Source: Macrostomum lignano
Taxonomy: Eukaryota
Length of the DNA: 44,325 nucleotides
Assembly (NCBI GenBank): GCA_002269645.1
Contig: NIVC01004491.1
Coordinates: 1 to 44,325, forward strand
Reading direction: 5' to 3'
Part shown: positions 6,049 to 44,325 of the stretch, one piece after another
Layout of the letters: every line of letters begins with the position of its first letter
How positions within the stretch are numbered: position 1 is the first letter of the stretch
Program-made: the position numbers and the translations under genes
Notes under the pieces: generated by a model
Databases searched by the model: none
Told to the model about the DNA's origin: nothing
What the model saw: only the letters and a program-made list of their open reading frames with translations

Positions 6049-6052
<4 letters not shown>

Positions 6053-6092: not shown

Positions 6093-6094
<2 letters not shown>

Positions 6095-9371: not shown

Positions 9372-9675
9372 ATAATATAATAATTAATAATTGATTACAC
9401 CTGCCCCAATTGGGCCAGATGTGCAACCGACTGCTCAGCCGCAGCTATTGCGCGGCGCATCTGAAGGCTGCGTACAGTCCAAGGACTGGGGGTCGCCACA
9501 CGCACCCTCAATTACCCCAGCTAATGCTGGCGCCCATTTTACAGCTGGGTGAACTGAAGCAGTGTAGAGTTAAGTGTCTTGCTTAAGAACACAAATTGTT
9601 CCAGTGGGATCGGGAATCGAACCCCCAACCTTCAAGTCGTAAGTTCGACGCTCTAATCACTAGTCTACAACCGCC
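9372..9675 (-). mobile_element. SINE family 1, copy 2
   Basis: Reverse complement of the 5336-5636 element along its full length, with an AT-rich tail at 9372-9392. Confidence 0.85.
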
Positions 9676-10205
9676 TTCAAGAAGGGGGAACACCCTTCTA
9701 CAAACCCCCTTCCTTGTGCTTCATTGTGCCTAACATTGTGCTTCAAAAAGAAAGCATTAGGTGTAAAAAATACTTCAACAATATCACATAATATTCTATT
9801 TATATTCTCCCTCATCGAACAGCTGTTGAGGCGCGGACTCGGGCTAAACTCAATTTTGGGGGTTCAAATCAGTTCGGCCTTACCGATCCGAACCAACAAG
9901 CCCAAGCCGTTCAGGCGGTGTTCCCGCGGCCACTAAATTGGGGCTAATTCAATTCTGCCTCCTCGTATAGAGCGATACCCTAGGCCAGCTTTTGGCAGGG
10001 TCTGAACTCTGCAATCTTTTGTTTTTCTTGCGCTCGGTTCCGATTTGGGCGGAGACAGTGGATTAAGGCAGTCCGGCCTTGCAAAGTTTACAGAAAGAAA
10101 CATCTGAAGCGACAAACAAAGTACAAAGTGTGCAAGCAAACATGTCAAGTTCAATGGCGAGCATAAGAATTCCACGGCTTTACACAAGAAACACAGGGCT
10201 GAGTA

Positions 10206-10725
10206 CAAGGGCGTCGCCGTGGATTTTATTGTGGGGGGACAAAGCTGAGAATTCAACATGTACATGACTAAATTCCTAAATTTCCATTATTTTGAGAAAT
10301 TTGCTGTCAGACTCAGCACTCATTTTAGCGCCGCAGCAGGCACTCATTTTAGCGCCGCAGCAGGCACTCATTTTGGCGCCGCAGGCACTCATTTTGGCAC
10401 CGCTGGCACTCCTTTTAGCGCCGCAGGCACTCATTTTGGCACCGCAAGCATTCATTTTGGCGCCGCAAGCACTCATTTTGGCGCCGCAGGCTCTCATTTT
10501 AGCGCCGCAGGCACTCATTTTGGCGCCACAGGCACTCATTTTAGAGCCGTAGGCACCATTATGGCGCCGAAGGCGCTATATTTTGGTGCCCTGAAGAAAA
10601 ATTATTGATTATCACGAGTCACAAGGTGGGTGGGGGGGACAAAGCATTGGCATTTCCCCCATAGCTTTTACTGAGGGCCGAGGGGACATCTCCCCCTTGT
10701 CCCCCCCCCGGTGGCGACGCGCCTG
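10206..10725. mobile_element. hAT-type MITE with perfect 8-bp TSD
   Basis: TIRs CAAGGGCGTCGCC / GGCGACGCGCCTG; TSD GCTGAGTA at 10198-10205 and 10726-10733. Confidence 0.85.
10316..10572. repeat. 21-bp (first two units 24-bp) tandem array inside the hAT MITE, ~12 copies
   Basis: Unit GCACTCATTTTGGCGCCGCAG; produces the spurious MSACGAK/ALILAPQ/AGTHFGA repeat ORFs. Confidence 0.92.
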
Positions 10726-10820
10726 GCTGAGTACGTGCGGCTCACCTGCAGTCACAGCTCATGACTTAGCAATCAGCGATCCAAGAGTCACAGAATTTCA
10801 GTAATTCTCCTCCCAGTTTG

Positions 10821-10975
10821 ACATCTCAGCAACTTTCCTATGAGCCTTGATTTCTCAGCAATTTTCCAAATGATTAACACCTTGACATCTCATCGATTCC
10901 CCCTGTAAGTCATGACATCTCATAAATTCCCCCATGAACCTTGACATCAAATGACATAAAATTCCCTATGAGTCT
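10821..10975. repeat. Degenerate ~29-bp tandem repeat, ~5 units
   Basis: Recurrent TTGACATCTCA..TTCCCYATGAGYC. Confidence 0.5.
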
Positions 10976-12446
10976 TTTATGTTCTACAGGGCGATTCCTA
11001 TATGGTTTAACCCTAACTCTGACCCTAACTCTAAACCTAACCTTGTTGAAAGTCAGAATTTCAGAGAGTCAGAACTTCCCATAAGCCCCAAAATTTCTGA
11101 GTAATTTGAATTTGAATATTTTGAGTAAGTGATTTATATACTCAAAGAAGACAGCATGCAGTATTCTCCAAGCCGTCACACCAGTACAACCCACCCCGTT
11201 CAGCCAGGCAAGTTCTCATCTGATATCTTACCTATGAGTCACTATGAGCTTACCTATGAGCCTTAATTTATATAGCCCTTTATTAAAGCGCGTCCATTGA
11301 GGTAACGTCAGTTGCTGGGGGAATTTCAGTGAGTTCCTCATGCCTGCAACCAAATAATTAATATAATGCAGACTCCATTAAGGTTCATAGGAGCCAAAAA
11401 GTCTGACGCGATCTCGCAGTGGCAGCCTTGGACCGCGATTGATGGCGACAAACTGCCCGGATGCTTCCCAGGAAGCTGGGGAGGTGGGTCAAAGCTAAAA
11501 GCAGTCCCTTAAGCTATTGTGTCGCAACGATTGGGGCTGTCAAGAGCCCGTGTCAAAGAAAACAGAATTATAGCATACTCAAAAACGCTTGAAGCAGCAT
11601 TGGTTCAAAACCTCTAGCATTTAATGCATAAAGCAAGCTGGAAATGGAGCTACAGTATGCTGCCGTGCAAGCATTAGACCCCCCCCCATGCAGAGCTATA
11701 CAGATAATATGCGCGGCACAAAAGCTAAGGAGCAGAAACAGGAGAAAAGAGAGATTGGTAAAAAGCAGAAAAAAGACAAAAGAGACACCACACTCCAGTC
11801 ACTCCATGGGCCATGAAAAACGGCATTATGCAGCCACACGAATCGGTGCTGCTGGGCAGAGCAGAAGCGAAATGCACTCAGCTTGGCCTGGGATGGCTGG
11901 CTCCGAGAATGTCGCCGCTCTCGATTCGCCTTTCTGAAAATCTGATAAAACACTGCGGCCTTCATCGGCCGGATCTGCGTTTCGGTTCGAGTGCCTTTTG
12001 TGGAGCAATTCTTTAAGACAGAGGAGATTTTTCTCTTTCAACTTGATACGATCAATTTCCCTCTTTCGATTGAGTAGTTTGTGTTGCTTAACGGACCTGC
12101 AGAGGGAGCTCATCTTCCTGTTCGCTGCTCTTGACTGAAGCGGAAGCTTATTCAGCCTGATGGCTCCCTCCCAAAGCACGGCTTGTAGTTGACTTTCAAG
12201 CCGGTTTGTCTTTGATTAGCGTTTGCCCGTCTGCAGAAACTCTACAGACCGAACGCATGTGATGAGTGCTTCAATGACCGGCTAAGGCTAAAATTAGCGA
12301 ACAGCAGATAGGTACGTAGAAACGCGTCTTAATAAATCAGGTACCGCTGAGCTGACCAAGGTTTACGAGCCAACGCAAAGAGCGGGCTGTTCAGACTTCA
12401 ATATGAATATTTCAATACATTGCCGTATCTTCCCTGTAAGCCGGCC

Positions 12447-14621
12447 TTAGCGTCGCTTAGACAAGGAGGTGCCTCGCCACGACGCTTCGTGCCTGAAGAA
12501 TGGCGAACGCATCCCCACTGTGTAAGTAAAGCCGGTTAATGATGCATTACAGTCTCCCACAGTTCTGCAGCTCTTCAAAGCGGATGCGGTCCCGATCTCA
12601 TATCTTATTATCTGGGGGATTAGCTGAGCGCGGCTCTCAGCCCTAAGCTCATCGCCCCCTTCCCAGCGGACCCATGCCTTCGTTTTCCTGCGGATTTCTT
12701 CTTCTGTAAAAGAGGCGACAAACGCATTGATAGAGTCGGGATGTAGGAGACTAGAAGATAGAAACTGATATGGAAGGCGAGATCGCGGCTATGGCAGAGG
12801 GGAAACGCCGCATCGCGACCTGAGACATGCTACGCACGCTCAAAATCTGCTAAGTTTCTTCAAATTTTCCACACAGACATCAAGGCCCCAGGCCGCCAAA
12901 CTCATTTGAAGGACATTTTAAATGAAAGGGCTGAAGGCTCATTACAGCAGCTGTACATAACTACAAAAACTCTATAAGGAGGAAGGAATTTTAGGCTTGG
13001 TTTTTTAATTTTAAGTCAGTAAAGTTTAACTAAGGGGCAACTCGAAACAAGGATGCAATTTCTACAGTAATTTGTGACCGTGATCAATGCTCTCTACCTG
13101 AAGACGTCCTGGGACTCTCTCACTAGTTTCTAGCCAGATCTTCCATTCAGGCAACTTTGAAGACATGAAAAAACGGCAGGAAATTCGGTGTGAGATCGGC
13201 GTGAGATCTACAGACGCCTACAAATGACAGTTTGGTGAAAGTTTTGATTGTATCACAGCCGTCTGTTGTGAGATCGGTGTGAGATCTACAGACGCCTACA
13301 AATGGCACTTCGGTATCTAAGCCCTGAAGCAACAAAATTTCAAGCAGCTTCGATATGAATTTGTCTTACTTTAGACTTTTTTCACAGAAAATTGATGACC
13401 AAAAAAGCTTAGAATTTCTGCACTGCCGCCTGAATGTTTCACATAAGCAGGACTGGTGCGAGACCCTTATTATCACGTATCTCTAATGCTATATATGCTC
13501 TCATATAGGCTTAGAGATGCTCATTTCTCCTCGATGAAGCATACATATCCTGCTGGCCTCGATTCGATAATGGCCCCGTGATGGCGGCCGGCTGATTGGA
13601 CATGAGAGGCTGGCAGCGCAGCAGTCTCAGCTTGCCGGATCCTGCAATTCCTTGCTGATGAGGCCGCACAGATTTTTGGCTGCCTGCCGACACTTCGCAC
13701 GCAGCCCCCCCCCCTCTCGGACTGACCGGACCTACATGGAGGCGGCGACTGTAATGGACTGAGAAGGCGATCAGTGGGTGGGGCAAACTGCGCGCTGTGC
13801 ACTGCAGTCGGAGCATTTAACGGCGGCCATTAGATTGGAGAAAAAACTGCTTCATCGCGTGGGAGCGCAATTCTAATTGGCTCAGCCCACTGGCCTGCAT
13901 CCGGTGCGGAGGCCCAGGACAGACCAGCCAAACTCGGAATTTTGTTATCGAATCTGCAGAACCAAATTCGAGTTTAAAACTTGGAATCCTACTAGAACTT
14001 TTTTCATAATGTCTAAGTGTTGAGTGTAATCGTGTCCTAGTAAGTTATCCCCTGATTTGCTATCTCATTAGTCAAGTCGAGTAGATAAGCTTGATAATAA
14101 TAACTATCTTTTGGGCAAATTCCAGGCTAATTAGTAGCTGTGATCTTCTCCATCTCATGAGGCTTCTGACCTTGGGCTTTGATTGACGAACTGCAGTTAA
14201 ATTTAGGTTTAATACTGCAGGTGAGCAGCTCGGATCTAATGAAGAGTATTCGACTTCTTCTCGAATTGTATATAGTGTGGGTTGCAATTAATCCTGTTAC
14301 TCCGTAGGTCAGCCTAAGCACAGTTTGCGAAAATGTTAGTGCTACTATCAGTAGACTGTACCCTCAGCACTCGGTAATTCACGCTTTGACGCACAGCGAT
14401 CTGACGCAAATTCAACAATCAAAGCCCAAGATTTGCGGATGAAATCTGCATTGTAGCTCCCGAGCCGCTCTGCCCGTCTGTTTATTTCTGCAACAGTCTC
14501 GGGTTTCAAGCGCTCCGCGGTTGCTTTCCAATGTGCAGGGGCGCTCCAAAGAGGTACCTCTCTCCCACTCTCTACGGCCATATATTCCAAGAATCGCTTC
14601 CTCTCTTTTCCCGAAAAAAAA
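12447..14621 (-). CDS. Possible unrecognised two-exon (or larger) gene
   Basis: Exon 14621 (or ATG 14581) to 14362 with donor GAG G|GTACAG (phase 1) joins in frame to exon 12703-12447 (acceptor CTCTTTTACAG|AA GAA, TAA at 12449-12447); ~158 aa from MAVESG; no recognised domain. Confidence 0.3.
13190..13304. repeat. 37-bp direct duplication (13190-13226 and 13268-13304)
   Basis: GTGAGATCGGYGTGAGATCTACAGACGCCTACAAATG occurs twice. Confidence 0.8.
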
Positions 14622-15977
14622 CTGGAAGAAGCACAGAACAACGGAAAGGGAAAAGCGGGAAGTCCGACTGCAAAACAACGATGCAGCAGGGGCCCGTCGT
14701 GTCAGGCTCATTTAGCGCTGGACATCGTGCGCGACTTCTGTAAGTTGCCAAGGTTCAATTGCTTTTCAAAGCTGTTTTTTTAGGTCGAAATTGCCAAAAC
14801 TATAGTTGGAAAGTCTCACCTGAGCTACAAGGGTCTTGGCAAACTTCTGCAACCAAAACTGCCTGGAAGCTGATTCATCATCGCAGCAGCCATGCAGTAT
14901 AGCTCATGCAAAGAAAACTTGCAGTACTTCACAACAGGCTTACAGAGGCGAACTCTGCAGAGTGGGTCTCTGTTAACGCTTTTTGTCTAGGTTAAACAAT
15001 CTCCAACATAAATATTGACAACACTCAGGCACTTTGACAAACTTCACTTTTATACACGTTTGCAAATGGTTGGCCAAAAAAATTTCCTAGCTAATTTCCT
15101 TTAACCACAAAGGGCGTTTACCCCGCCACGCTTCTAAACAGTAAATTTCGCTTCCAAAAATTAAAATTTGAATCTAACTTTTCAATTGTAAGATGATTAA
15201 TATTCTTCAGATCTTATAATATGACAATTAACTCTTATGACGAAACAGATCAATAGTGAAGTTCTCGTTTTACTAAAGCGGATTTAATTCTAAGCTGACA
15301 AAATTGAAATTATTCATTTTGCAAAGCCTGTTTCGCGTTTATGCCTGGTGCCACTTAATAGTAATTTTAAAGTACTTTTCTTTAGTGAACCGAATTAAAC
15401 AAGATATTGGGAACAAACAGCGAATGCTATTTTAGTTGAGCGAAAATTCTTTGAGAGCTCTTGGTAATCTCTTAATACTCTTGGTAAGCTACGCTTAATA
15501 AGTACAATTATAATTTAAAAATATAAAATACTTTTACTAGTCTTGATTGCCTACTATGAGTATGCGGACATGTACATGCATGCGGGAAAGATTCGATAAA
15601 ATGATGCATCCATGGTCCCGACAGGGCACGAATACGAGGCTCTGCTCACAGGCATCTCTATCCAACAGTTTAATGAAATAGTGAAGTTTCCAACGTTGCA
15701 AAAATGCCGAGAGAAGTATCGAGAAATTTTATTTCCGCTAATTTTTCTTATAGCATAGCTCCTAGCTCCGGAGTTGCTGATAATCCATAGGTACAGAGGG
15801 AGCAAAATTGTCCTCAAAGCAGAATCTACAGGAAACGGATAAAGCTTCGGTAGTCAGAGTCGGAGAGTCAGCTGAGAGTCGGAAGTCCCCAGCAGCTCTA
15901 ATTAGTTGAAAGGAGTTTGCACCTGCAAGGTAGACTTGCATCAGCTGTGGCACTGCAAAACTGCAGCGTTTCCTGAT

Positions 15978-16510
15978 CTCGTCTCCTCTCCGTCTTTTCT
16001 TCTCTCCTCCTCTTTCCTCTTTTCTAATCGCCTATTTTCTCATTTCCTCACCCCCCTCTCCTCTTCGCTCTTCTCCTCTCCTCTCCTTTCCTCTCCTCTT
16101 CTCTTCTCCTCTCCTTTCCTCTCCTCTGTTTCTCCTCTCGTCTCATCTCCTCTCCTCTTCTTTCCTCTTCTCTCCTCTCCTCTCCTCTCCTCTCCTCTCC
16201 TCTCCTCTCCTCTCCTCTCCTCTCTCTCTCTCCTCTCCTCTCCTCTCCTCTCCTCTCTCTCTCTCCTCTCTCTCTCCTCTCCTCTCTCTCTCTCTCTCCT
16301 CTCCTCTCCTCTCCTCTCCTCTCCTCTCCTCTCCTCTCCTCTCCTCTCCTCTCCTCTCCTCTCCTCTCCTCTCCTCTCCTCTCCTCTCCTCTCCTCTCTC
16401 TCTCCTCTCCTCTCCTCCCTCTCCTCTCCTCTCACCTCTTCTCCTCTCCCCCTCTCCTCCCCACTGCCCTCCTCTCTTTTCTTTTCCTCTTTTTTAATCT
16501 CTTTTCCTCA
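15978..16510. repeat. (TCTCC)n / CT-rich simple repeat
   Basis: Near-pure pentanucleotide core at about 16290-16395 with degenerate flanks; source of the SSPLL and RGEER ORFs. Confidence 0.95.
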
Positions 16511-17924
16511 CCTGTTTGAGGGAAATGATTAATTTTTAATCGCAAAATAATGTTTGACCTCAGCATCCTACAATGCGTCCATCTCCAGCACCAAGAGTTT
16601 GGCAGCTAGCTCAGCATGTATTAGTAGGCACAAGTCAGCCAGCAGGTGGCCAAACAAGCCCGAGGCTCTCAACGCAGACCCGCATTCACTCAATTTCTTT
16701 CGGCACAGAACGAAATTTAATCTCCCTTTTCACCCAATCTCTTGAAAGCACCCGTTTACCTTCTATCCCGCACTCTTCCCTCCTCAGCTAAGTGGCCGCC
16801 AAAAACCGTAAGCCTTAAACAAAGTCAGAAGTCGGCCTAATATTATATGGAGTTAAAAATACCTTCATCATGCGTTCAAGCACCAACCATGCCCAGTTTT
16901 TATCCTCCAATCCATGCCAATTCAAGCGATCCCGCTTTGGCGGCCTGCAATCTCTTTTTGCTAGCTTAACTATCCGACTAATCCGTGTTGCCATGCGGGC
17001 ATCTCCACCCCCTCTGATCCCCTGATTCGCTGACTCGCCTCTCCTAAAACTATAAGGAAAACCGTTCTCACACTAGCATTTGACGGTTGAAATGCTGATA
17101 TTCAAGCATATCCATTGAGCTTCAGACTTATCAAACTTTTCTCAACATGTACCGCAGTCACAGAACACGGTAAGAAGTTGTTTATTCAAAAGTTTAATTG
17201 AAACAGAAATTATTTTAATTGAAGTTCTTGTGGACATTGGAATTCGGAATTTCGGATGCTCATTAGTAGGAAAGTTGCATTGATATTCCACAGCCATATG
17301 CAAGGTCCAAGGGCCGTATAGCTATTTTAGTATTCTCATTCAAGCCCATCCTTCTTTCACCTAAGGGGCCTCCGCATTCCTGCCAAAATGCACATTTTTA
17401 TCGCTCTATAGGGATCGCGATGAAACAGGAGCGTGTAGCTTGGCTTTGGCTGTTTACATGGGACTGAGGCCTTAGCAGCATTGGAATGGATTACAATTTT
17501 ACAACCGCAACTCGATATGTCGGCTAACAAGGTGTGAATTCCTTCTTAAATTGACATCCAACTTAGCACTATAAGTGCTATAACACTATAACACTAATAA
17601 TGCTAATAGTGCTATAGTGCTATAACACCTTGTCTCTTAGTTGATTCCACCTTCGTATCTTCATACTGCTGCTTCCAGATGATCCAAAACATTCAAAATC
17701 ATTTATATTTCTTCTCTGATCTACCATGTCGCTCTTTTCGTTTAGCTCACATTGAAGTCGATTTTTTTCCATGGTTAAATCATTCGGAAACCAGGCAAGT
17801 TTGATATTGCTTTTTGCTTTGCATTGCTTTCTGTAAATATTTTCTCAACCTCTCTAACTTTTTCTTTTGGCTCCGCCTTTTTCTCTTCGGTCTACCTCTA
17901 GGTTATAGCGTGCGTAAGCGCTCC

Positions 17925-18410
17925 TGTCTATCGTCAAAAGATACCATGATCGGGACAAGATAGAAAGATACGATCCTGACTATGGTCGAAGGATACCACG
18001 ATCGGCACAGGACAGAAAGATACGCTCTTGTCTATGGTCGGAAGATACCCTGATTGGCGCAAGATAGAAAGATACGCTCTTGTCTATGGTCGGAAGATAC
18101 AATGATCGGCACAGGACAGAAAGATACGCTCTTGTCTATGGTCGGAAGATACAATGATTGGCGCAAGATAGAAAGATACGCTCTTGTCTATGGTCGGAAG
18201 ATACAATGATTGGCGCAAGATAGAAAGATACGCTCTTGTCTATGGTCGGAAGATACAATGATCGGCACAGGACAGAAAGATACGCTCTTGTCTATGGTCG
18301 GAAGATACCCTGATTGGCGCAAGATAGAAAGATACGCTCTTGTCTATGGTCGGAAGATACAATGATCGGCACAGGACAGAAAGATATGCTCTTGTCTATG
18401 GTCGCAGGAT
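17925..18410. repeat. 52-bp minisatellite, ~9.3 copies
   Basis: TGTCTATGG recurs at 17925, 17977, 18029 ... 18393 (52-nt period); unit TGTCTATGGTCGGAAGATACAATGATCGGCACAGGACAGAAAGATACGCTCT. Confidence 0.95.
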
Positions 18411-19457
18411 ACTTTGCTAGTTTTAGACTAGCAAAGTGCCAATCTAAAACAGTATCTGATGTTCTTTGGCATCGAGCTGAAAAACCTGCAGTATTAGTCA
18501 AGACAACAGGTGGCTACGTGAAGTGACATGAGACGCGGCAGCACTGAGGATTAAATTTTCCAATTTTGCCTGCACAGTATTGAATTTCCGTCAGAGGCCG
18601 AGGGTGAGGGTGGCGCGTGCCATCGTAGACTTCGCAAGTTGAACTAAAACTCGAACGATTTCCGGAGCTGCTCTAAAGCATAGAAGAGGCATACTAAAAC
18701 TTTGAGCGAAAGCTCATCGCAATCCACCACAAAAAGCCATTACGGATTGCTCAAGCTAGACAAAAAATTATGATTCCTTTTGTGAATCAAATTCAAGGCC
18801 AGCGGAATGCCTATATCTAACTGTGCATTGCGCTGGGGAAAGTCTAAGATCAAAGCCGGCTTTTAAGCCATCCCTAATGCCTTTATACGGTGATAAAAAG
18901 TGGAACCCGATGGAGGAAAGCTGACTGCTCAACGGCAGTAAATCTCTGATGGAATTGAGGCTTTGTATTAGCAATATGGAGCAGATGCTTACTACATTAG
19001 ATGAAGGCATTGCTTTGCGACTTAGTGAGTATCAATGAGGGCGCGAGTAATAAAAACAGTCCTATTGGCTCACTGCTTAGTAAAGATATGTACGAGTGTA
19101 TTCTTTGGATTGAGGATTTTGGTCATTATTTTAGTTCTTCTTAACTTCGAAATTCATGCTCGATTGTATAGGGTGTACTCTAGAAAAGACTAAAAAACGT
19201 GGGACAGTGCGCATGAGTGCGTACCTGCGTACAGTATATCCGCGCACTTGCATGTGCTCAGGGGTCAGAGGAATGGGCGGAATTGACTTAGCACTGATTG
19301 CGAGGATCCGCACAGCCTTCCTGCGAATTTTTTTTCATCATCTTCCACAGCTGGTTCACTGACGTCCCACTGAGTCAGTTGTTGGCGCCCCCTAATCGCA
19401 GTATTTCTGCCAATATCCGCACGCAGAAACTTCGAGCATGTGACGGGCGCCTTTCCC

Positions 19458-21662
19458 ATGGACACAGCTTTCATCTCCGGCCTGTCCAAGTTCCATCTGG
19501 ACGCGGCTCGCATGCGCAAAGACGACGACTTTTCGGACCGGATTTCGCACACCTTCACGACCGCCCTGATCGTGCTGTTCTCGCTGGTGATCTCGTGCAG
19601 ACAGTACATAGGCAAGCCAATCGCCTGCTGGGTGCCCACTGAGTTCACCAGAGCGCAGGAAGAGTACACGGAGAATGTCTGCTGGGTGACCAGCACTTAC
19701 TATCTGCACACGAACGATCCCAGCTTCCCTAAGAAGGACGAGCAGCGGTACAATATCCAGATTGGCTACTACCAGTGGGTGCCTTTGGTGCTGCTGATTC
19801 AGGCGTTTCTATTCTATCTGCCCTGCCTGATCTGGCGCCTGTTCAACTGGCAGTCCGGCATCCAGGTGAACTTTACCTTTGGGGCTTTTTCTTTAACGTA
19901 AAACGAAGTTTAATAAGAAGCTTGTCCGTACGTTCGCACATTCGTAAGGCCTAAGTTTTTTTAAACTACTGCATGTATGGAAATCTCAGTAGGAATATTT
20001 TTGCAACTCTATTCCCAAATCTGATTAGGACATTCTATGTTTCTCTGTCAGGTGAAAAAATTGCGGGAACCTGCGCTCAGTTCTACTCAAAGTTCAACGA
20101 CTGCTCTAGGGCAATTGTTTAAAGACTTCACAGCTCTAGCCAAAGCAATTTTCTCCAAAATTTGTCTTTTTGTATCTCGACAAATGGTTTATTTCTCAAA
20201 GCAGTCAGTACATTACAAATCTAAGAATGTGTTCATCTTTAAGAATTAATAAGAGTCAAATTATCATGATATGGAATTTTTTAGTTTTTTAAACGAAAAT
20301 TAGCCGCTCCTCACTTCCGAGGATCATTTTCTCTAGTAGCAAGACTATTAATTAATATTACTCTTTGAAACAGACAAAACTATTGTACAAGTCAAGCAAA
20401 ATTACATCTCTAGATCTTCCTACCTCTCTAATGTTCGGGGCTATTTTTTACGTCTAAAATTTTACAACAATGGCCCTATTCGACACAATGCTACAATACC
20501 ATACACAGAGTTGCCTCTATACGTATTAGAGGTACGATAATGAGAAATAGCTGAAAGCCTACATAACATAACCCCGCTTCCTCAGCTGTCCAACATCATG
20601 GAGGTGGCCTGCGACGTGGAGCTCATCAAGGATCCATTGAGCCGGCAGACAAGCGTGCGTTATGTTGCCAAGCACATTGAGGACTCACTGGGTCCTCAGC
20701 GCGAGCTCCGAGCGGGCTGCGTCACCAAGCTGAAGCAGTGCGTGGCCAAGAATTGCTGCTTCTTCTGGTTCGGCAAGCGCTATGGCAACTTTCTGGTGTG
20801 TCTCTATCTCATCTGCAAGTCCTTCTACATCTGCAACGTCATCGGACAGTTCTTTCTCATGAACAAGTACGTTGAGTAGCTCTGACTGGATACAAAAGAA
20901 CTGATGGTCCTGATTCAAATTATCTTAGCATTCCCTGCACTGAATTTTAGGTACCTGGCAACGAACTACACCTTCTACGGCCTGGAGCTGCTGAGAGACC
21001 TGGCGGAGGGTCGGCAGTGGGAAGAGAGCGGCAATTTTCCACGCATCACCATGTGCGACTTCCATGTGAAACGCATGGGGGCCAATCTGCACCGCTACAC
21101 CGTGCAGTGCGTTCTGCCTATTAACATGTTTAACGAGAAGATCTACATCTTCCTCTGGTTCTGGATGGTTCTCGTCACAGTCGTGGCCGTCAGCAGCTTC
21201 GCATTCTGGATCTACAAGTCCGCCTTCCGCAGCAACCGTGCCCATTTTGTGCGAAAGTTTCTGAAGCTGCGGAGCATCCTTGAGCCCGGAGATAAGAAGC
21301 GCAGTTTCAATTTTGTAGACGATTACCTCCGCCCAGACGGCGTGTTCATTCTCCGCTTGGTTGCGCAGAACGCTGGCGAGCTGGTCGCTAGCGAAGTCAC
21401 CGAAGCCCTGTGGCTGATGTACAAATCCAAATCGATGATGTCAGTGGGGCTGCCCAACGATCTCACAAAAGACGTTGTTGGCAGCGGCGGCGGTGGAGGC
21501 GGCGGCGGCGGAGGTGGCGGAGGCGGCAGCGGTGGCATCGGAAGCGGTGACCCCGGCATCGCCAGGAAGATGGCAGCCGCGGCAAGGCGCCGCCTGCCGA
21601 ACACGCACCCGCACACCCAGCCACTCAACGGGAACGATGACGACCCTGGAGAGTTTGTCTAG
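19458..21662 (+). CDS. Innexin (gap junction/hemichannel protein) A, 466 aa, 3 exons
   Basis: Exons 19458-19865, 20586-20866, 20951-21662 (GT-AG; phases 0 and 2; 1401 nt). Signatures: DDDFSDR, EL1 CWVP..CWV, YYQWVP, P in TM2 (FYLP), EL2 FPRITMCDF..CVLPINMFNEKIYIFLWFW. Confidence 0.95.
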
Positions 21663-23628: not shown

Positions 23629-24162
23629 CCCTTATCCCCGATCCCCTTATCCCCGATCCCCTTATCCCCGATCCCCTTATCCCCGATCCCCTTATCCCCG
23701 ATCCCCTTATCCCCGATCCCCTTATCCCCGATCCCCTTATCCCCGATCCCCTTATCCCCGATCCCCTTATCCCCGATCCCCTTATCCCCGATCCCCTTAT
23801 CCCCGATCCCCTTATCCCCGATCCCCTTATCCCCGATCCCCTTATCCCCGATCCCCTTATCCCCGATCCCCTTATCCCCGATCCCCTTATCCCCGATCCC
23901 CTTATCCCCGATCCCCTTATCCCCGATCCCCTTATCCCGATCCCCTTATCCCCGATCCCCTTATCCCCGATCCCCTTATCCCCGATCCCCTTATCCCCGA
24001 TCCCCTTATCCCCGATCCCCTTATCCCCGATCCCCTTATCCCCGATCCCTTTATCCCCGATCCCCTTATCCCCGATCCCCTTATCCCAGATCCCCTTATC
24101 CCCGATCCCCTTATCCCCGATCCCCTTATCCCCGATCCCCTTATCCCCGATCCCCTTATCCC
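23629..24162. repeat. 15-bp minisatellite (CCCCTTATCCCCGAT)n, ~36 copies
   Basis: Near-perfect 15-nt period; the opposite strand carries two G4 runs per unit. Confidence 0.97.
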
Positions 24163-27860: not shown

Positions 27861-28689
27861 CTGAGTCTTCAGTGCTGCCCCTCAGCAAACCTTTCTGAGT
27901 CTTCAGTGCTGCCCCTCAGCAAACCTTTCTGAGTCTTCAGTGCTGCCCCTCAGCAAACCTTTCTGAGTCTTCAGTGCTGCCCCTCAGCAAACCTTTCTGA
28001 GTCTTCAGTGCTGCCCCTCAGCACACCTTTCTGAGTCTTCAGTGCTGCCCCTCAGCAAACCTTTCTGAGTCTTCAGTGCTGCCCTCAGCAAACCTTTCTG
28101 AGTCTTCAGTGCTGCCCCTCAGCACACCTTTCTGAGTCTTCAGTGCTGCCCCTCAGCAAACCTTTCTGAGTCTTCAGTGCTGCCCCTCAGCAAACCTTTC
28201 TGAGTCTTCAGTGCTGCCCCTCAGCACACCTTTCTGAGTCTTCAGTGCTGCCCCTCAGCAAACCTTTCTGAGTCTTCAGTGCTGCCCCTCAGCAAACCTT
28301 TCTGAGTTTTCAGTGCTGCCCCTCAGCACACCTTTCTGAGTCTTCAGTGCTGCCCCTCAGCAAACCTTTCTGAGTCTTCAGTGCTGCCCCTCAGCAAACC
28401 TTTCTGAGTCTTCAGTGCTGCCCCTCAGCAAACCTTTCTGAGTCTTCAGTGCTGCCCCTCAGCAAACCTTTCTGAGTTTTCAGTGCTGCCCCTCAGCACA
28501 CCTTTCTGAGTCTTCAGTGCTGCCCTCAGCAAACCTTTCTGAGTCTTCAGTGCTGCCCCTCAGCACACCTTTCTGAGTCTTCAGTGCTGCCCCTCAGCAC
28601 ACCTTTCTGATTCTTCAGTGCTGCCCCTCAGCACACTTTTCTGAGTCTTCAGTGCTGCCCCTCAGCAAACCTTTCTGAGTCTTCAGTGC
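27861..28689. repeat. 34-bp minisatellite, ~24 copies
   Basis: Unit CTGAGTCTTCAGTGCTGCCCCTCAGCAAACCTTT; no spacers. Confidence 0.97.
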
Positions 28690-29531
28690 GGCACCTTTGA
28701 TGTTAATGTTTTATACCAGCTATGTTTTATTACAAAATCTCGTCTTAAAAAAATTTAATGGTGTAGTTGGAATGCATGTTTTCTAAATTGTCGAGTAGCC
28801 TTAGCTGAAATATTGTAGCCAATTGAACTGTATGTTTAAAGTTTTCACAACTAACCATAATGATGTGTACATGAAAATACGCACCTATTATTTTTATCTT
28901 GTGTCAGGAGTTATTACAATTTTTACTAACCAATTAATAAATCGATGCTTGCCTGCCTGTTTGTTTTGCTGGCTAACTTCTGACGCATTTCTTTTAACAT
29001 TTTTATTACCCTTTTGTTATTATTGACCTTGGTGCTGGCGCCTTCACGTAACTGGCGCCTCTATCTACTTAGCCTTCATGCACGAAGTATTGTCATCACG
29101 TGACCTTTTGTTATTCTACCTGTATCTGGTCCTGTTTATGTCACCAAATAAAATAAGCTGTGTGCAGTAGAAATAGATTTGCAAATTGTGCAACTGTTGT
29201 TCCCATTGCTTACCCTGTACTAATCTCTGCACGAAACACAATAGCATTTAGAGTACACAAAAAGCGCTAGTTTCTACTAACGGTTTTTTGGTGTACGGTT
29301 TTTTCATTTATGGCAGATGAGCGCTCTTTAATATCTTTCACTCTCTGCAATACTTTTAAATCGTAATCGAAATTCACGTCACATCCTATGTCGACGGTAT
29401 TGAACGATTTCGGGCCACGAGCAAATTAAATAAAATGATGACTACATAGCTGCTCGTGTCCCACGCGGGCGAATTTGCTGCTTTCAATTCTTTTTTATCT
29501 ATGGCCAAGCTTCTCAGGCGTAAAACCTGAT

Positions 29532-30305: not shown

Positions 30306-33300
30306 ATGAGCCGAGTGGCCAGGGACTTCTGCAGCTTTTTGTCCGCATTCCTAGCCGGTGTGTGCCTGGCGCTCGCAATCCACCAGTTTGTCTACCTTGC
30401 TTCTTACACAACGAATGCTCAGGTAGCCTCAGGTGCCGACTGCTACGCTCGAGAGGGCGGCTGCTCTCTTAACGCCAAGGTTGACTTGAAGTCGAAACAC
30501 AGAGACGCAAAATCTGGCAATGCGTCACAGATCAGAATCTTCTGCTGGATTATGGTGCCATACATGATGCCTCTAATGACCATGATGATCATAAATGAGT
30601 CCTGGGGTCCCAGATGCAACGGATTTGCTTTTGTGGCTCCTCGGATAGCCGTTGGTGAACTGAATTTGCCACTAATTGGTAAGTTACGCTGCCTACAGTG
30701 CATGCAATTCGGCCCGAGTGGCAATTAAGCAGTATTTTCTTTACAAAAAGGTTCTTTCAGTAAGGCCTTAAATTTGTATTGTATTTTGAATTTTGATTTC
30801 TGCTGTCAAGATAGTACAGGACATTCGAAAATTCTTGTCACTTGTAGCAGAGTTTTTGATGCATGGAATTTTAAATTTCTTTCAGGTTTTATTTATACTT
30901 GTGTCAGAAGAAGACATGAAGGGCAATTTAAGCTATTACTTAAACAAATTAATATTCACTGATTTTTTGTTCAGATAATAAAATGAATGAGCTTGCTTAA
31001 CTTTGTGTAAAATAGTGCAAAAATTGTGTGAAATAATTAAAACTTCGACTTAGATCATGCCCCTAGCTAAGCCCCAGTCTAGCATATGCACAGATTCTAA
31101 AATAACTGGGCCACTCAGGCATATCCTTAGTACGAGGTAAAACAGCTTTCTACTTTCAGTTCAGTAGCAAAACCGAATACATAAGCTATTTTATCAAAAT
31201 AATGGCAGCTGAAATGACTTTGATAAGTTTAAAAGCCCAAGCTTGCAGGCGTAAACAACTGGCTAATTGGGTCAGCAGTTATGTACGTTAGCCAGTCCAC
31301 TGAAATGTACATAGCAGCTTTAGGCTGGAATTCCGATAAGGACAATAAAAATCAAGGTGGGAGGGGGTAGTGAGTAGAGTAAAGGCGCGGTTAAGAGGGT
31401 TTAAGCTAGGGGCGGTAAAAGCCAATAAATGGGCCTGGGCTTTAAAAATGCTTTAAAATTGGTCTGTTTACCTTACTACTGAACTGAAAGTAGCTTACAC
31501 GCAAGTGTGATGAGTGGCGCATCTAGTTATTCTAGTATCTGTGAGCATCCGCAAAAATAATAGCAGCTTGTCTTGTATGGTCATTTTTTCAACAAAGCGA
31601 CATGGCAGAAAAAGTGTTTTGTACATTTATTTTACTCAGCACAGATGCCATTGTAAATAACTATTACCCAAACACAGGGACGAGTCAAAACGGTCATTAT
31701 TACACCATTGAGCGACTCCACCCGCAGATTTTTTCGAATTGCTAGGTGCAGGCATACTGCTATGATTTTATTAAACTAATTAAAAATTTGAGTGCGCTCC
31801 GAAACATGAGTGCGCTAACGATATAATTTACCATGAAATTTGTACACGGGTTAAATGTACATTGAGGAGCAGCTGTGGAATAATGGCCAAAATCAATTGC
31901 TATTGCATCTGGGTGAAATTACATGTATATATACACTGCATAAGCGTCCTATACTTACGAAGTTCTAGACCGCAATGTATAACAAACACCAATCCGCAGA
32001 CGTGAACGCCCCAGCATTCGAGGCGAGCCAGTTTCACACGGTGGAATGGAAACGAATTTGGCTGTCAGCCTGGCAGCTGCATAGCAACGGAGCAGAGCAG
32101 AAATACGACTATTTCCTGCTGGTGCGCTCAAAAAACTACGTGGTCGTGGAAAATGCTCGCCGCATGTTGAGCAGCCTGGACCCCAGTAAGCCGTTCATGC
32201 TTGGCAGGCGGATGCAACGGAAAGTCATCGAACTCCAGGGTGGTCAAGAGAGCTACGATGCCGACTACCTGACGCGGACGCCGGTATTGTACTATCGAAT
32301 GGCGCCTTCGCCAAGATGGTGACGCTCGGATTCAGTGGCACCAGCTCTGATCCAGTCATCCGACTGAACTGCGGCTCGCATAGCGTGACCAAGTCCTACG
32401 ATACCCAGCTGTGTGAGTCAGCTCACTCGGTCAATCGAATTTCCAGTCAGGCTCGAATCCTGATACTTACTTGCTAGCCTTTACCCTGCTAAACAAATCC
32501 AAATAAGTATCGAGATTTATTATGTAAATTGGGTTTCTGCATTAACTAATCAGACCCCCAGATTCACAGGGGAGCGTTGATACAAGGTAGACTGATAGGC
32601 AATGGAATTAAAGCTTTAGCTATCGAAACTCTGTAGGTGACTAATACTGAAGCAACTTTTTTTCTATTCATTCTTTCTTTCATCCAAGTTGAGAGTATGC
32701 GTAAAATTGTCCAGCTATTTTGTAATCAAAGCAGTTCTCAGTACTAATTAGTAATATATTACAGCGGGAAATTATCTCAGGATAAATGTTGAAATTTTCA
32801 GCGGCCTGCCTGAAGAGCCTGGGCGTAGAAACGATGGACAGCCGGGACAGCCGCGGCCGGGAGCGGTTCCACCCGGTGCCGCCTGGCAACCTGCTGGAGG
32901 ACGGCCGAATGCCGGCCTGGCTGAGAAACGCCAGCTACTACAGACCGGTCCGAGCGGTACGGGTGCTCAGCGGGGGCAGCTAAAGTAGAAAGACCAAATT
33001 TTTCCCGCACTAAATTCCCAGTACATACAAGTTTTACTCACCTTCTGGACTTTTAAATTCGAAAATGAAGCATGTATTTTTGTCTGATTTTTTAATTTCT
33101 TGGAAGCAGGGGACTGTGTGCACCCTGGGGCACTTTAAGCGACATTGTCACACAACCGGTAAAAGGCATTACTGCCCATTCCGCCGACTCCCCTCAGCAG
33201 GCACACAAGCGCACGGATATGTACGCAGTCATACGCAGAGGCACACACTCACACAGGAGTGTACAGCGACCCTTATTTATCGTTAGGCATGTACACTTCA

Positions 33301-33740
33301 CTGTGCCTTGGGGTTGGACCACAAGGTCGTTAATTGCACGAGCAGAGCCAAGCCGAGATTCCGATTCAGCTCCGAATTAATGTGACGGCACTTGGAATCG
33401 AGCCTGCGTCGCTGGCACATAACGCCGTGCTGGACCACTGGGGATACTTCATCCTCATATTTGCCCAGTCGCTTTCAATGTCATCTGATGAAGATATGAG
33501 CTCGAGTAGAACAACTTTGAGCAGTGATTAAGTGGTTATCAGATTGAGAACGACCTTCTGCTTATTTTAGTGGCTGAATTACATGTAATATAACTGAATT
33601 TAATTTTCCAGTGCCTGAGCTGTCCTAGTCCCGAGTCCGTCACCTTCTTCGACGTCACTGAGTTTCACAAGACCGACGCGCTGATTCGCCACATGGGACC
33701 GGCGCTGCTTCCGTACAAGACGACGTCTGAAGAGAGATGA
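30306..33740 (+). CDS. C1GALT1/COSMC-family (GT31) type II membrane protein, ~356 aa, 4 exons; predicted catalytically degenerate; 1-nt frameshift near 32271
   Basis: Exons 30306-30678, 32000-32412, 32802-32956, 33612-33740 (GT-AG). Motifs: N-terminal TM, IRIFCWIM, WGPRCN, YDYFLLVRSKNYVVVEN..DPSKPFMLGRR, DAGIVLS, CLKSLGV..DSRDSRGRERFHP, SVTFFDV. The exons total 1070 nt, and the splice phases are consistent only if one base is missing in exon 2. Confidence 0.82.
31150..31493. mobile_element. Small MITE with 18-bp perfect inverted ends (TA-flanked, Tc1/mariner-like), in intron 1 of the GT31 gene
   Basis: CTACTTTCAGTTCAGTAG (31150-31167) versus CTACTGAACTGAAAGTAG (31476-31493). Confidence 0.6.
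33088..33453 (-). mobile_element. Candidate second tRNA-derived SINE family, in intron 3 of the GT31 gene
   Basis: The minus strand starts GGATGAAGTATCCCAGTGGTCCAGCAC..GGCTCGATTCCAAGTGCC (A- and B-box-like), has an unrelated ~300-nt body and ends in an A-rich tail; single copy in the window. Confidence 0.45.
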
Positions 33741-33802: not shown

Positions 33803-34109
33803 GGGGTTTTAGCCGAGTGGTTAGAGGGTCGGACCCACGACTTGAAGGTGGGGGGGGGGTTCGATTCCCCATGGCACTGGAACAATTTGTTTCCTTGAGC
33901 AAGACACTTGACTCTGCATTGCTTCAGTTCACCCAGCTGTAAAATGGGTGCCAGCATTAGCTGTGGTAATTGAGGGTGTGTGGTGACCCCCAGTCCTTGG
34001 ACTGAACAGCCGTACGCAGCCTTCAGATGCACCGCGCAATAGCTGCGGCTGAGGTGTCGGTTGCACATCTGGCCCAATTGGGGCAGGTGTAATCAATGTT
34101 ATAATCATT
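33803..34109 (+). mobile_element. SINE family 1, copy 3
   Basis: Full-length match to 5336-5636; lies just 3' of the GT31 stop codon. Confidence 0.85.
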
Positions 34110-35057: not shown

Positions 35058-37226
35058 TTACACGAATGTCCCCTTCTCGCTGTTGGGCTCTCCGGTGGCG
35101 GATAGCATCGGGTCGGCGTAGTCATTGTCACGGATGGGCCTGGAATTCTTCGTGCTGGGACTGGCGCGATAGCTGTCCCACAGTTGCTTCACAACGTCGC
35201 TCACGACCGGGTCGCCGGCATTTTTGCTGATTATTCGTAGCACAAATGCGCCGTCAGCGCGCAGGTGCTCCTCCAGGAAGTCTCGGAGCATTCGGCGCTC
35301 CTGCTGGTCAGCCGGGGTGATGTACTTTTTAATGGTGGCGTATCGTCGCTTGGATAGCAGGGTCCACAGGAACCAGGCGATTGCGTCCACAATGGTGATG
35401 ATGGACACAAAGACGAACAGAAACCAAAGAAATATGTACGCCTGTCGTGTAATTGGCAGGTGGCTAGTATTAGACTAGGACACACATGAGAAGTTATGGC
35501 TACTGATTTCACGTTGATTAAACCCTTGATTAATTCTTCATATCGGCTATCGTAATTTTAACACCCTGTACTCTATGTAAAAACTTTTTATCCAAGGCTC
35601 ACCTTTTCGTTAAATAGGTTGACAACAAGAACGCATTGCAGGGTCCTCGGGTGCATATTTCCAAGCACTCGAATGTCAAAGTCGCACAGAGTTACTCTAG
35701 GAAAGTGCCCAGTGTGGTGCCAGTCACGATTGTTGATCAGATCATTCAGCACCTCCCAGCCGTAGAACTTGTAGTCCGTGCCAAGGAAGCTGTTGAGCAG
35801 GAAGAACTGGCCCACGACATTGGCGATAAACAGCAGCTTGATGCCGAGGTACATCATGGTGAGATAGTTGCCTGTCTTCGTGTAGCCGCAGAACAAGATG
35901 CGGAATATGAGTCGCTTCGTGCGCACAATAAGACCGTACTTCTGAGTGCGTTGCTTCACTATGGTGAGCTCGATGTGTCGCGTCAGCAAAGCAACTTTCT
36001 CCTGACGTTTCTGCTTATCATCCTCAAGGCAGTTTAAAGCGGTGGAAACCAGGTCGCTGATGTGAATTCCTGTGCAGTGGGTTGAAATATTGAGAGTTAT
36101 AGCGCGAGTTTATAGCTCAGTCGCTAGCATGCACATATTAGGTTATCTAGGCCCTACCTATGTGAATGTCATGTCTGAATTTGGCTTCCAAGACTCTTCT
36201 ATGAGCGTAATTGTCGGCTTTTACACTGAAGTACATATACCGGATGCTACAACTTACCGACCTGTAACTTTGTCACTAATTTTTACCCTAAATAGTACGA
36301 ATACACACGGTAATAGTAAATATTTATTAGTTTGAGTGGTTGTTCCAGCAATAATATTAATAATAATTAATTACACCTGTCCCAATTGGGCCAAATGTGC
36401 AACCGACAGCTCAGCCGCAGCTATTGCGCGGCGCATCTGAAGACTCCTACGCTGTTCAGTCCAAGGACTGGGGGGTCACCACACACAGCCTCAATTACCA
36501 CAGCTAATGCTGGTATCCATTTTACAGCTGGGTGAACTGAAGCAATGCAGAGTTAAGTGTCTTGCTCAAGGACACAAATTGTCCCAGTGGGATCGGGAAT
36601 CGAACCAACGAACTTCAAGTCGTGAGTCCGACGCTCTAACCACTAGGCTACAACCCCTTCAATCCAGCTGGCTACAATCCAGCAATAGAAACAAGCAGTC
36701 ATAGAGAGCGCGAGTTGTTTATGAGAAAAGCACACAAGCCATCTGTTCATTAGAATCCTGAACATTAACCAACGCATATTCTGGTCTGTATAACCGACAT
36801 GAACCTGTAATCGAGTTAGTCACCTGACTGCCAGTTCAGCAGCTTCCAAATCGCACTAGGCAAGTAGAACAGCAAAGCCTGCAGAGCCAGCACAAACGGC
36901 ACCCACTGGTAGTAGGTGAGCTCTTCTCTGCTCCGATCCAGTTTGTCGCTTGGAATCGACTCGTTCTCTGGCACATAGTAGGTGTTCTTCACCCAGCAGT
37001 AGTTCTCGGCGAATTGCTCCCAGCCGTCCTTGAACTCGGGCGGGATCCAGCACTGAACCGGATCTCCAACCAGGTACATTTTCGTGCCGATTATGGTCGA
37101 AATGAAGATTATAATAATCGGCGTATAGTACGAATTGATTCGGTCGACGGCATCCTCGTCGGAAATCCGGTGCTTGCGGCTGGTGAACTTCAGCTCCTTC
37201 ACCTTGTCAAAGAACCCCGTATCCAT
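35058..37226 (-). CDS. Innexin B, 417 aa, 3 exons
   Basis: Exons 37226-36824, 36069-35603, 35441-35058 (GT-AG; phases 1 and 0; 1254 nt). Signatures: DEDAVDR, CWIP..CWV, YYQWVPF, FYLP, FPRVTLCDF..CVLVVNLFNEK|AYIFLWF. Confidence 0.95.
36350..36657 (-). mobile_element. SINE family 1, copy 4 (in innexin B intron 1)
   Basis: Reverse complement of family 1; candidate TSD TCCAGCAATA at 36344-36353 and 36678-36687. Confidence 0.85.
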
Positions 37227-43548: not shown

Positions 43549-44325
43549 TTGCATCTGCACCAATTGGGTCATACGATCAACCGACAGCTCAGCCGCAGCT
43601 ATTGCGTGGCACATCTGAAGGCTACGTACGGCTGTTCAGTCCATGACTAGGAGGTCGCCACACAAGCCCTCAATTACCCCAGCTAATGCTGGCACCCATT
43701 TTACAGCTGAGGGACCTGAAACAATTTAGACTTCAATGTGTCTAGCTCAAGGACAAAGAAGAACAAATTGTTCCAGTGGGATCGGGAATCGAACCCCAAA
43801 CCTTCAAGTCGTGAGTCCGACGCTCAAACCACTAGGCTACAACCCCCCCTATACGGGGGTTACGAGTAGTAGGAGAGGTAACTACTTCCAGTTAATACTC
43901 ACATGCAACTGCCTGCAAGATATCTGCAAGTCGGAGTCGTTGAATTCGTACGGTATGTTCCATCCGAGCGGGCCGTACTTGCGCCTCTCTTGGATGAGCG
44001 CGTGAAAGAAGCACAGGCCGAAGAGCAGTTTCCGAAACACTTCCGGCTTGTTGCAGGTGTCATAGAAAGACGGATCGTTAATAGGGTGGCTCTGATATGA
44101 GCGCAGCAGGTTGGAACGCAGATTCATGGGCGTTTCATTCGTCATTTTCACCGCTCGCTGCAGAATGCTGACTGGGAAGTCTGGTGTTGGTAACTGGTAA
44201 GCCACAGTCGGAACTCTTTGTGCAGTCGGTCGGCATTCGTGATAAGAGAGTCAGATTTTTTCCAACTCCGGAAGCCACGACACGGCCAGATGGCAGTTTG
44301 CAGCACCACCGCAGCTGCCTGTCTT
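39705..44325 (-). CDS. Axonemal dynein heavy chain, 3' end (AAA6 and C-terminal domain), single-headed inner-arm type (DNAH3/7/12-like); partial, continues beyond the window
   Basis: Exons >44325-43903, 43162-42902, 42305-42117, 42026-41751, 41622-41443, 40746-40560, 39850-39705. Motifs [94 protein letters not shown]; several indels at 44189-44312. Confidence 0.93.
40991..41376. mobile_element. hAT (Charlie-like) MITE with internal GA-rich SSR, copy 1
   Basis: TIRs CAGGGGCTGGCAAAC / GTTTGCCGACCCCTG; TSD CTTCAGAA / CTTTAGAA (7 of 8). Confidence 0.85.
42435..42738. mobile_element. Same hAT MITE family, copy 2, opposite orientation, with internal CT-rich SSR
   Basis: TIRs CATGGATCGGCAAAC / GTTTGCCGATCCCTTG; its first ~100 nt are the reverse complement of the last ~100 nt of copy 1; degenerate TSD GTTTAGAA / GTTTATGC. 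Confidence 0.75.
43459..43546. repeat. (AAT)~29 microsatellite
   Basis: Perfect trinucleotide run forming the tail of SINE copy 5. Confidence 0.97.
43459..43846 (-). mobile_element. SINE family 1, copy 5, with expanded tail (dynein intron)
   Basis: Reverse complement of family 1 from about 43547 to 43846; tail expanded to (AAT)~29. Confidence 0.85.

Follow-up and report, generated by a model that had tools for sequence, protein, structure and literature searches.

In vertebrates the T-synthase C1GALT1 depends on a private, dead paralogue, the chaperone COSMC (C1GALT1C1); the enzymes of fly and worm manage without one, and the reason for this difference is an open question. The gene of the flatworm Macrostomum lignano considered here is a four-exon, C1GALT1-like member of glycosyltransferase family GT31 and occupies positions 30306-33740 on the + strand of contig NIVC01004491.1 (assembly GCA_002269645.1), the full 44,325 nucleotides (nt) of which were analysed and are referred to here as the window. 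An earlier reading of the DNA made without database searches (hereafter the sequence-only reading) took the product for either a deep relative of the COSMC lineage or a convergently evolved, catalytically dead GT31 protein that might serve as chaperone, regulatory subunit or lectin. Where does this gene come from, what has its product lost, and is it still a gene? Taken as a whole, the explanation that we judge probable is a lineage-specific duplicate of the worm's own C1GALT1-like enzymes, standing beside the active-looking paralogues P0023 and P0298, whose product has lost its metal and donor site and is most likely a pseudo-glycosyltransferase.

Replacement of the metal and donor site

The conceptual protein was compared with Drosophila C1GalT1, whose structure is solved (7q4i; sequence match with E 4.6e-14), in a pairwise alignment and two multiple alignments; Drosophila numbering is used throughout, and residue roles are taken from González-Ramírez et al. 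2022 (PMC9065035). In that enzyme D181, D183 and H324 coordinate Mn2+, D182 binds the ribose, Y325 binds the pyrophosphate and D255 is the catalytic base (PMC9065035). All three Mn2+ ligands are replaced in the window protein (D181R, D183K and H324F), as are the ribose-binding Asp (D182S) and the pyrophosphate-binding Tyr (Y325D). The former DDD (DxD) motif is encoded by CGC TCA AAA (32125-32133, + strand) and reads Arg-Ser-Lys, on which the pairwise, profile and multiple alignments agree, while the site of the C-terminal His lies in TFFDV (33642-33656, +), with Phe at 33648-33650 for H324 and Asp at 33651-33653 for Y325. The loss of both motifs, first noticed by eye in the sequence-only reading, is thereby confirmed by alignment to 7q4i and by the multiple alignments.

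The remainder of the donor site is affected as well. The uridine and pyrophosphate contacts around EGR, L155 and K158, including R152, are not conserved, residue-by-residue matching in this segment being uncertain because of a five-residue insertion there. The glycine-rich loop (G-loop; 32277-32297, +) is degenerate, reading D-A-G-I-V-L-S against a consensus of G-A-G-Y-V-LS; with the two preceding codons it is TADAGIVLS against SGGAGYVLS, two glycines and the motif-IV Tyr (GxxYxxS) having been lost. Just upstream of this loop lies a 10-residue insertion, IELQGGQESY, which is of low confidence in the structure model. The xED motif (32397-32402, +; TAC GAT) is reduced to Tyr-Asp, its Glu being lost and the catalytic base D255 (GAT, 32400-32402) being kept. 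Given the loss of these metal- and uridine diphosphate (UDP)-binding residues, canonical binding of UDP-galactose and Mn2+ is most likely impossible, and the protein is most likely a pseudo-glycosyltransferase.

Outside the donor site, the N-acetylgalactosamine (GalNAc)-peptide site keeps Y218, S220 (as Thr) and W300 and has lost Y213 and Y304. Also kept are the motifs RIFCW, WGPRCN, PFMLGRR and DSRDSRGRERFHP, together with five of the six conserved cysteines. In place of the vicinal Cys-Cys pair stands Cys-Pro, and another Cys has appeared three residues before it (CLSC).

Gene structure and predicted fold

Exon 1 (30306-30678, +) opens with the ATG and encodes a short cytoplasmic tail (MSRVARD), a signal-anchor helix, a disordered stem, the first strand RIFCWIM and the WGPRCN motif, and ends in phase 1 within the D125 codon. 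It is followed by intron 1 (30679-31999, +; 1321 nt, GTAAGT..CCGCAG, GC 0.375) and by exon 2 (32000-32412, +), which carries the core of the GT-A domain, including the G-loop, the xED site and the strand that once bore DxD. Intron 2 (32413-32801, +; 389 nt, GTGAGT..TTTCAG) lies in phase 1 within the S262 codon. Exon 3 (32802-32956, +; ACLKSLGVETMDSRDSRGRERFHP...AWLRNASYYRPVRA), in which W300 is kept and Y304 lost, has its nearest counterpart in the M. lignano paralogue P0298 (CLKGLGVEFIDSRDSSGLERFHP). Intron 3 (32957-33611, +; 655 nt, GTACGG..TTCCAG) is in phase 0, and exon 4 (33612-33740, +) encodes CLSC and TFFDV and ends in the stop codon TGA. All three introns are GT..AG, giving six canonical splice sites, and GC content separates exons (0.51-0.70, with GC at third codon positions, GC3, of 0.69) from introns (0.37-0.46). 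As spliced in the window, the coding sequence is 1070 nt long and so lacks one base for a whole number of codons; with one base added it yields a 356-residue product (...ESYDADYLTADAGIVLS...). Every string quoted in the sequence-only reading was found in it: YFLLVRSKNY, TFFDV, SYDTQL followed by SACLKSLGV (the two being split by intron 2), DSRDSRGRERFHP and LGRR.

AlphaFold2 was run on residues 1-261 of the protein, as given by a UniProt copy, with 40 homologues; the model shows a confident signal-anchor helix at residues 2-41, a stem with a low predicted local distance difference test (pLDDT) score and a GT-A (Rossmann-like) domain at residues 76-240, mostly above 90 pLDDT. The best Foldseek matches of this model in the PDB were 7q4i (probability 1.00), then CHSY3-CHPF heterodimers, then Manic Fringe; a sequence search of the PDB reached no COSMC structure. 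The predicted structure thus shows a type II membrane protein that retains the GT-A fold. The earlier description of fold, cysteines and splice sites as intact therefore stands for the fold, through the 7q4i match and the model, and for the splice sites, but only partly for the cysteines, five of six being kept and one missing from the altered Cys-Cys pair.

The likeness to C1GALT1 is not due to chance, as the fold match and a family profile show. The Pfam Fringe domain (PF02434) scored 20.4 bits on the conceptual protein against a curated cut-off of 21 bits, a marginal result, and is precomputed for one of the UniProt copies (P0001). The profile that was built from 47 active C1GALT1-like sequences gave 154.6 bits, comparably distant to the 170-190 bits of vertebrate COSMC. 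By these scores, the window protein is about as divergent as COSMC, but in another direction.

Origin within the M. lignano family

The three best single-domain matches are all active-looking paralogues from M. lignano itself: P0011 (131 bits, 32% identity), P0023 (118 bits, 30%) and P0298 (116 bits, 29%). With P0023 and P0298, the window protein has in common CxxC or CxxxC in place of the Cys-Cys pair, the string CLKxLGV followed by E..DSRDS.G.ERFHP, and a loop insertion of the form GF(S/G)(G/S)T (GFSGTS / GFGSTRAPG). Its three introns agree in position and phase with those of the active M. lignano paralogue P0155 (Mlig000072g2, L002). Positions and phases of introns 1 and 2 recur in a homologue from the trematode Fasciolopsis (P0059, L001), so shared introns were dropped as evidence of a specific sister gene.

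Likelihood placement, computed with our own script under a reversible matrix derived from BLOSUM62 with four gamma categories on neighbour-joining backbones of 46-47 taxa, put the protein inside the pair formed by P0023 and P0298 with a weight of about 1.0. The outcome was the same at alpha values of 0.6, 1 and 2 and whether the other long branches were kept or removed, and all eight known sequences that served as controls landed as expected. The pendant branch measured 1.2-2.1 substitutions per site. A first placement had been drawn to P0148 (L003 10001-11176, ERZ25039508:contig_104366), which lacks introns and lies on a metagenome contig dense in genes; the attraction was put down to long branches and P0148 was removed. 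It is a Fringe-like GT31 gene with an altered DxD (FCGDDVY), and its contig carries MCM and CobW genes and comes presumably from a microbial eukaryote.

When 1.84 billion representative proteins were scanned with HMMER, with P0003 (which ends at exon 2) as query, no orthologue outside M. lignano was returned and nothing above 86 bits beyond the gene's own cluster, which argues for a lineage-specific and very fast-evolving duplicate; a word-indexed search with the conceptual protein returned that cluster and one weak match only. The family to which the duplicate would belong is well represented in the worm, with at least five C1GALT1-like groups, namely the window gene, P0023/P0297, P0298, P0302 and P0011. 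No second GT31 gene was found in the window, so the gene is not part of a local tandem pair. Elsewhere in the assembly, at least three C1GALT1-like genes form a tandem and inverted cluster around P0298 on NIVC01000363.1 (L005; 3-1644 on the + strand, 4132-6895 on the - strand and 10001-13669 on the + strand), a recent local expansion of the family in M. lignano. The window gene would then have arisen by duplication at the DNA level within this family and have evolved very fast thereafter.

Maintenance of the reading frame

The window copy carries a one-base frameshift in exon 2 (32272-32274, +, with the slip at 32273/32274; CTG AC_ GCG GAC), where a Thr codon lacks its third base. The frame correction proposed in the sequence-only reading thus dealt with a defect genuinely present in this copy, and restoring one base gives DADYLTADAGIVLS, exactly as in three UniProt copies from M. 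lignano (A0A1I8FTT9, A0A1I8J1E8 and A0A1I8J2M7; P0001, P0003 and P0004), which are 99-100% identical to the window protein over the first 261 residues, a match that identifies the window as M. lignano DNA. Since all three read through in frame, the frameshift is not fixed in the gene, a fixed one being what the sequence-only reading had named as a sign of a decaying pseudogene. The missing base is equivalent to the shortening of a two-base run, a typical error of long-read assembly, and the frameshift in the window may be one, or else a mutation peculiar to this copy.

The same public models end where exon 2 ends, at 261-262 residues, and exons 3-4 of the window complete the protein. UniProt names them automatically as an active 'N-acetylgalactosaminide beta-1,3-galactosyltransferase' despite the absent DxD. 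A homologue search with the conceptual protein returned only UniRef entries for this gene and none sourced from NCBI, and exact-protein look-ups of P0001 and of the open reading frame (ORF) of exon 1 matched no contigs.

Could the lost residues, the long branch and the frameshift be explained instead by relaxed selection on a decaying or recently dead pseudogene? The frameshift in the window copy, the pendant branch of more than one substitution per site, the missing orthologue in the HMMER scan and an NCBI annotation of Mlig_3_7 that seems to hold no protein for the gene are all consistent with this. Yet there is not one in-frame stop in 356 codons, at an identity of about 30% to the nearest relatives; when neutral drift of the coding sequence was simulated to 60%, 50% and 40% identity, a mean of 6.5, 8.5 and 9.9 stops accumulated, and none of 300 runs was free of stops at 50% identity or below. 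Every one of the six splice sites has the canonical sequence, GC3 is high, the structural motifs, five of six cysteines and the signal anchor are kept, and the one defect of the frame is lacking from three other copies and of a kind frequent in long-read assemblies. The absence of stops, the canonical splice sites, the high GC3 and the conserved anchor and fold together argue that most of the divergence took place under selection for an open frame, which makes a pseudogene unlikely. A lineage-specific duplicate with a dead donor site would show what is found here, namely catalytic and cofactor residues lost with the ORF, fold and gene structure maintained, a combination that on this indirect test assigns the protein to the pseudo-glycosyltransferases.

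Alternatives that keep the active site in use

Two further explanations accept that the gene is maintained and give the altered site a task of its own. Under the first, the protein is a metal-independent GT31 enzyme in which the Arg and Lys at the former DxD contact the donor diphosphate, perhaps with a new donor or acceptor. The change of both metal-binding Asp residues to basic ones (R and K), the retention of the catalytic-base Asp and of Y218, S/T220 and W300, and the maintained ORF would fit such an enzyme. No GT31 member is known to work without DxD, and R152, L155, K158, Y325, the glycines and Tyr of the G-loop and the Glu of xED are lost as well. Despite precedents among GT-A enzymes for basic side chains in place of DxD, for example in GT14 (PMC7185993), we therefore hold this to be an unlikely outcome.

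Under the second, the protein is a non-catalytic, lectin-like binder of glycans or glycopeptides, its dead site serving as a pocket for Tn or GalNAc-peptide and not as the partner of a paralogue. The pattern of conservation, with the acceptor residues Y218, S220 (as Thr), D255 and W300 kept and the donor site destroyed, is what such a binder might display. Two other acceptor residues, Y213 and Y304, are gone, however, and acceptor binding is weak even in Drosophila C1GalT1, about 9.5-fold weaker than that of UDP (PMC9065035), so that a lectin-like role appears improbable.

Relationship to COSMC

The remaining alternative is that the gene is a flatworm COSMC, a deep orthologue that shares with the vertebrate chaperone its descent from one ancient duplication. 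Several observations speak for it. Loss of DxD and of the C-terminal His is common to both proteins, and there are local likenesses in the DxD strand (FLLVR against FFLAR), in the helix of the xED motif (SYDTQLSACLKSLGV against SEDKQLAVCLKYAGV, 9 of 15 residues) and in the G-loop (32260-32297), where DADYLTADAGIVLS matches COSMC DLEYVTVEGGIVLS at 8 of 14 positions, the best score among 287 C1GALT1-like relatives. Moreover, in the view of Petit et al. 2020, C1GALT1C1 forms a lineage older than Bilateria (PMC8022947).

Whole-protein comparisons run the other way. COSMC was represented by a profile of 14 vertebrate sequences, retrieved with a human COSMC query, whose best 120 matches listed were vertebrate COSMCs only; in the trees and the placement, too, the C1GALT1C1 lineage was covered by vertebrate sequences and not by those of Hydra and Branchiostoma. 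Against this profile the window protein scored 51.6 bits and ranked 152nd of 162 GT31 proteins, ordinary active C1GALT1s reaching 110-150 bits, and BLASTP found it 24-25% identical to COSMC but 29-32% identical to the active paralogues of M. lignano. COSMC is marked by deletions at EGR and at W300-Y304; the window protein has neither, both regions having insertions or normal length, and where COSMC keeps the Cys-Cys pair the window protein has CxxC. Attachment to the COSMC stem was 21-26 log-likelihood units worse than the best placement (weight <1e-9) and was disfavoured by each half of the protein alone, by 8.3 and 14.0 units; in neighbour-joining trees the protein joined COSMC in only 11-12 of 200 bootstraps. 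Gene structure separates the two as well, with three C1GALT-type introns here against a single exon in vertebrate COSMC (PMC8022947).

Nor do most of the local likenesses withstand closer comparison. The helix segment (SxDxQLxxCLKxxGV), singled out as COSMC-like in the sequence-only reading, is equalled at 9 of 15 by the active paralogue P0298 and reached by five others, six of 287 in all, of which at least four keep DDD (P0133 and P0137 in the census of 300-420-residue proteins, P0298 and P0322 in the no-DDD check); being common to active paralogues, it was dropped as a COSMC-specific character. As a synapomorphy, the Arg that replaces the first Asp of DxD was likewise dropped, since the residue at D181 is not conserved among COSMCs themselves (Tyr in owl, Thr in Xenopus, Gln in skate), and the DxD strand as a whole matches COSMC at 3 of 13 positions, poorer than most active enzymes. 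The likeness of the G-loop we tentatively take as convergence in a degenerating loop. With profile scores, identity, indels and likelihood placement all contrary, descent from the COSMC lineage is very improbable, and on present alignments the loss of DxD and the C-terminal His is convergent, having arisen independently of COSMC. The convergent, catalytically dead GT31 protein that the sequence-only reading had offered as its other option is thus supported, in respect of its origin and of the loss of its metal and donor site only.

Comparison with known systems

The closest known family remains C1GALT1/T-synthase (GT31, Fringe PF02434; 7q4i), here with the M. lignano members P0298 (Mlig023313g3), P0023 and P0011 (Mlig000072). 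The window protein resembles it in type II topology, GT-A fold, catalytic-base Asp, the positions and phases of three introns and the motifs RIFCW, WGxRCN, PFxLGRR, xVLS and DSRDxxGRERFHP. It differs in having RSK for DDD and Phe for the C-terminal His, in the loss of Y325, R152, L155, K158 and the Gly and Tyr residues of the G-loop, in its 5- and 10-residue insertions and in an identity of only about 30% even to paralogues of the same species.

COSMC, the vertebrate chaperone of T-synthase in the endoplasmic reticulum (ER), is likewise a C1GALT1-derived type II protein without DxD and C-terminal His, and its G-loop has an acidic residue and Ile at matching places (xEGGIVLS in COSMC, xDAGIVLS in the window protein). 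The window protein would nonetheless be of independent origin. It has the W300 region, which is deleted in COSMC, and lacks the Cys-Cys pair, which is present there; it is encoded by four exons instead of one and has different residues at the lost DxD and C-terminal His. A second parallel is offered by CHPF/CHPF2 with CHSY1/3 (PDB 9o4g, 9q8z), the second-best fold match. CHPF and CHPF2 belong to the fringe-related branch and are catalytically impaired GT31 paralogues that act as obligate partners (PMC8022947). Those proteins are far larger, have two domains and act in the chondroitin pathway, whereas a partner role for the window protein is only conjectured.

A third set of counterparts consists of invertebrate C1GALT1-like proteins with an altered DxD, namely those of Pecten maximus (XP_033762497.1, P0121) and Gigantopelta aegis (XP_041366422.1, P0144) and two from Logan (P0119 and P0147). 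All four are single-domain proteins with substituted DxD and C-terminal His and are annotated only as 'C1GALT1-like'; in contrast to the window protein, their DxD substitutions are TDE, IGS and DGN, and likelihood placement gave no specific kinship. More broadly, 27 of the 287 relatives for which this site was scored have an altered DxD. Together with the C1GALT1C1-lineage genes that Petit et al. 2020 report from Hydra and Branchiostoma (PMC8022947), the DxD-less proteins of Pecten and Gigantopelta weaken the novelty that the sequence-only reading had claimed for the gene. GT31 pseudo-glycosyltransferases were already known in COSMC and CHPF, to which the window gene adds an independently derived example.

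Possible function and points against the favoured explanation

If the window gene is a duplicate whose product has lost catalysis, the protein would presumably act in the lumen of the ER or Golgi by other means. The most plausible role, by analogy, would be to assist an active paralogue, as its partner in a heterodimer or in its folding, because COSMC with T-synthase and CHPF with CHSY provide precedents in the same branch of GT31; binding of GalNAc-peptide is also conceivable, since Y218, S/T220, D255 and W300 are kept. The stronger proposal of an independently invented COSMC-like helper or regulatory subunit for an active C1GALT1-like enzyme, or in a variant a first metal-independent GT31 with Arg/Lys in place of DxD-Mn2+, we put forward tentatively and regard as unlikely.

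Several observations weigh against the explanation of the gene as a fast-evolving, dead duplicate from within the worm's own family. The first half of the protein placed alone is ambiguous. The likelihood placement depends on our own script, with its BLOSUM62-derived matrix and neighbour-joining backbone, and part of the pull towards P0023 and P0298 could stem from the amino-acid composition common to the species. Neighbour-joining bootstraps leave the long branch unresolved, joining it to a flatworm sequence in about one third of 200 replicates, so that the tree against C1GALT1 and COSMC that the sequence-only reading had suggested as a check decided nothing by this method; by likelihood placement it came out inside the pair of P0023 and P0298 and not beside COSMC. 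No orthologue was found outside M. lignano, so that purifying selection is judged indirectly, from the open frame, and not from the ratio of nonsynonymous to synonymous substitution (dN/dS). The window copy is frameshifted, and its G-loop is, at 8 of 14, the best match to COSMC among the 287 relatives. Finally, the conserved Tyr of the dimer interface (Y336 in Drosophila C1GalT1; Phe in other flatworm paralogues) is Ala here, which speaks against dimerisation with a paralogue in the canonical manner.

Genomic surroundings

The GT31 gene is flanked by two multi-exon innexin genes (19440-21662, +, and 35058-37226, -), whose exon ORFs match Pfam PF00876 with E from 1e-46 to 2e-9 and which stand in a divergent or convergent arrangement. 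Within intron 1 of the GT31 gene, a 21-nt inverted repeat (31150-31170 / 31473-31493; 95% complementary, 302 nt between the arms) is possibly a small foldback or an insertion resembling a miniature inverted-repeat transposable element (MITE).

The rest of the window is rich in minisatellites, with 34-bp units at 4588-5250 (19.5 copies) and 27861-28696 (24.6 copies), 15-bp units at 23629-24162 (35.7 copies), 52-bp units at 17919-18412 (9.5 copies), (TCTCC)n at 15977-16476 (100 copies) and 21-bp units at 10316-10590 (12.8 copies); the array at 4588-5250 yields spurious ORFs of 171-236 residues in three frames. A dispersed repeat with a B-box like that of transfer RNA (tRNA) genes (GGTTCGATTCCC...) is present in four copies (33858-33880 on the + strand; 9601-9623, 36584-36606 and 43773-43795 on the - strand) against 0 expected by chance, and one of the repeat copies begins about 60-120 nt past the GT31 stop codon. 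ARAGORN and Rfam called no tRNA at this repeat, which is thus probably a tRNA-derived short interspersed nuclear element.

Significance

The main present value of these results is that they correct the UniProt annotation of the gene as an active enzyme and show its resemblance to COSMC to be convergent. Dead members are common in expanded enzyme families and DxD-less mollusc proteins exist, so the surprise is limited. Since RNA interference and transgenesis are available in M. lignano, the case is testable. An independently evolved dead paralogue of T-synthase would give a second, comparative case in which to study the role of such proteins, and, if this one does prove to be a COSMC-like helper, animals would have evolved private pseudo-enzyme partners for the making of core 1 on at least two occasions.

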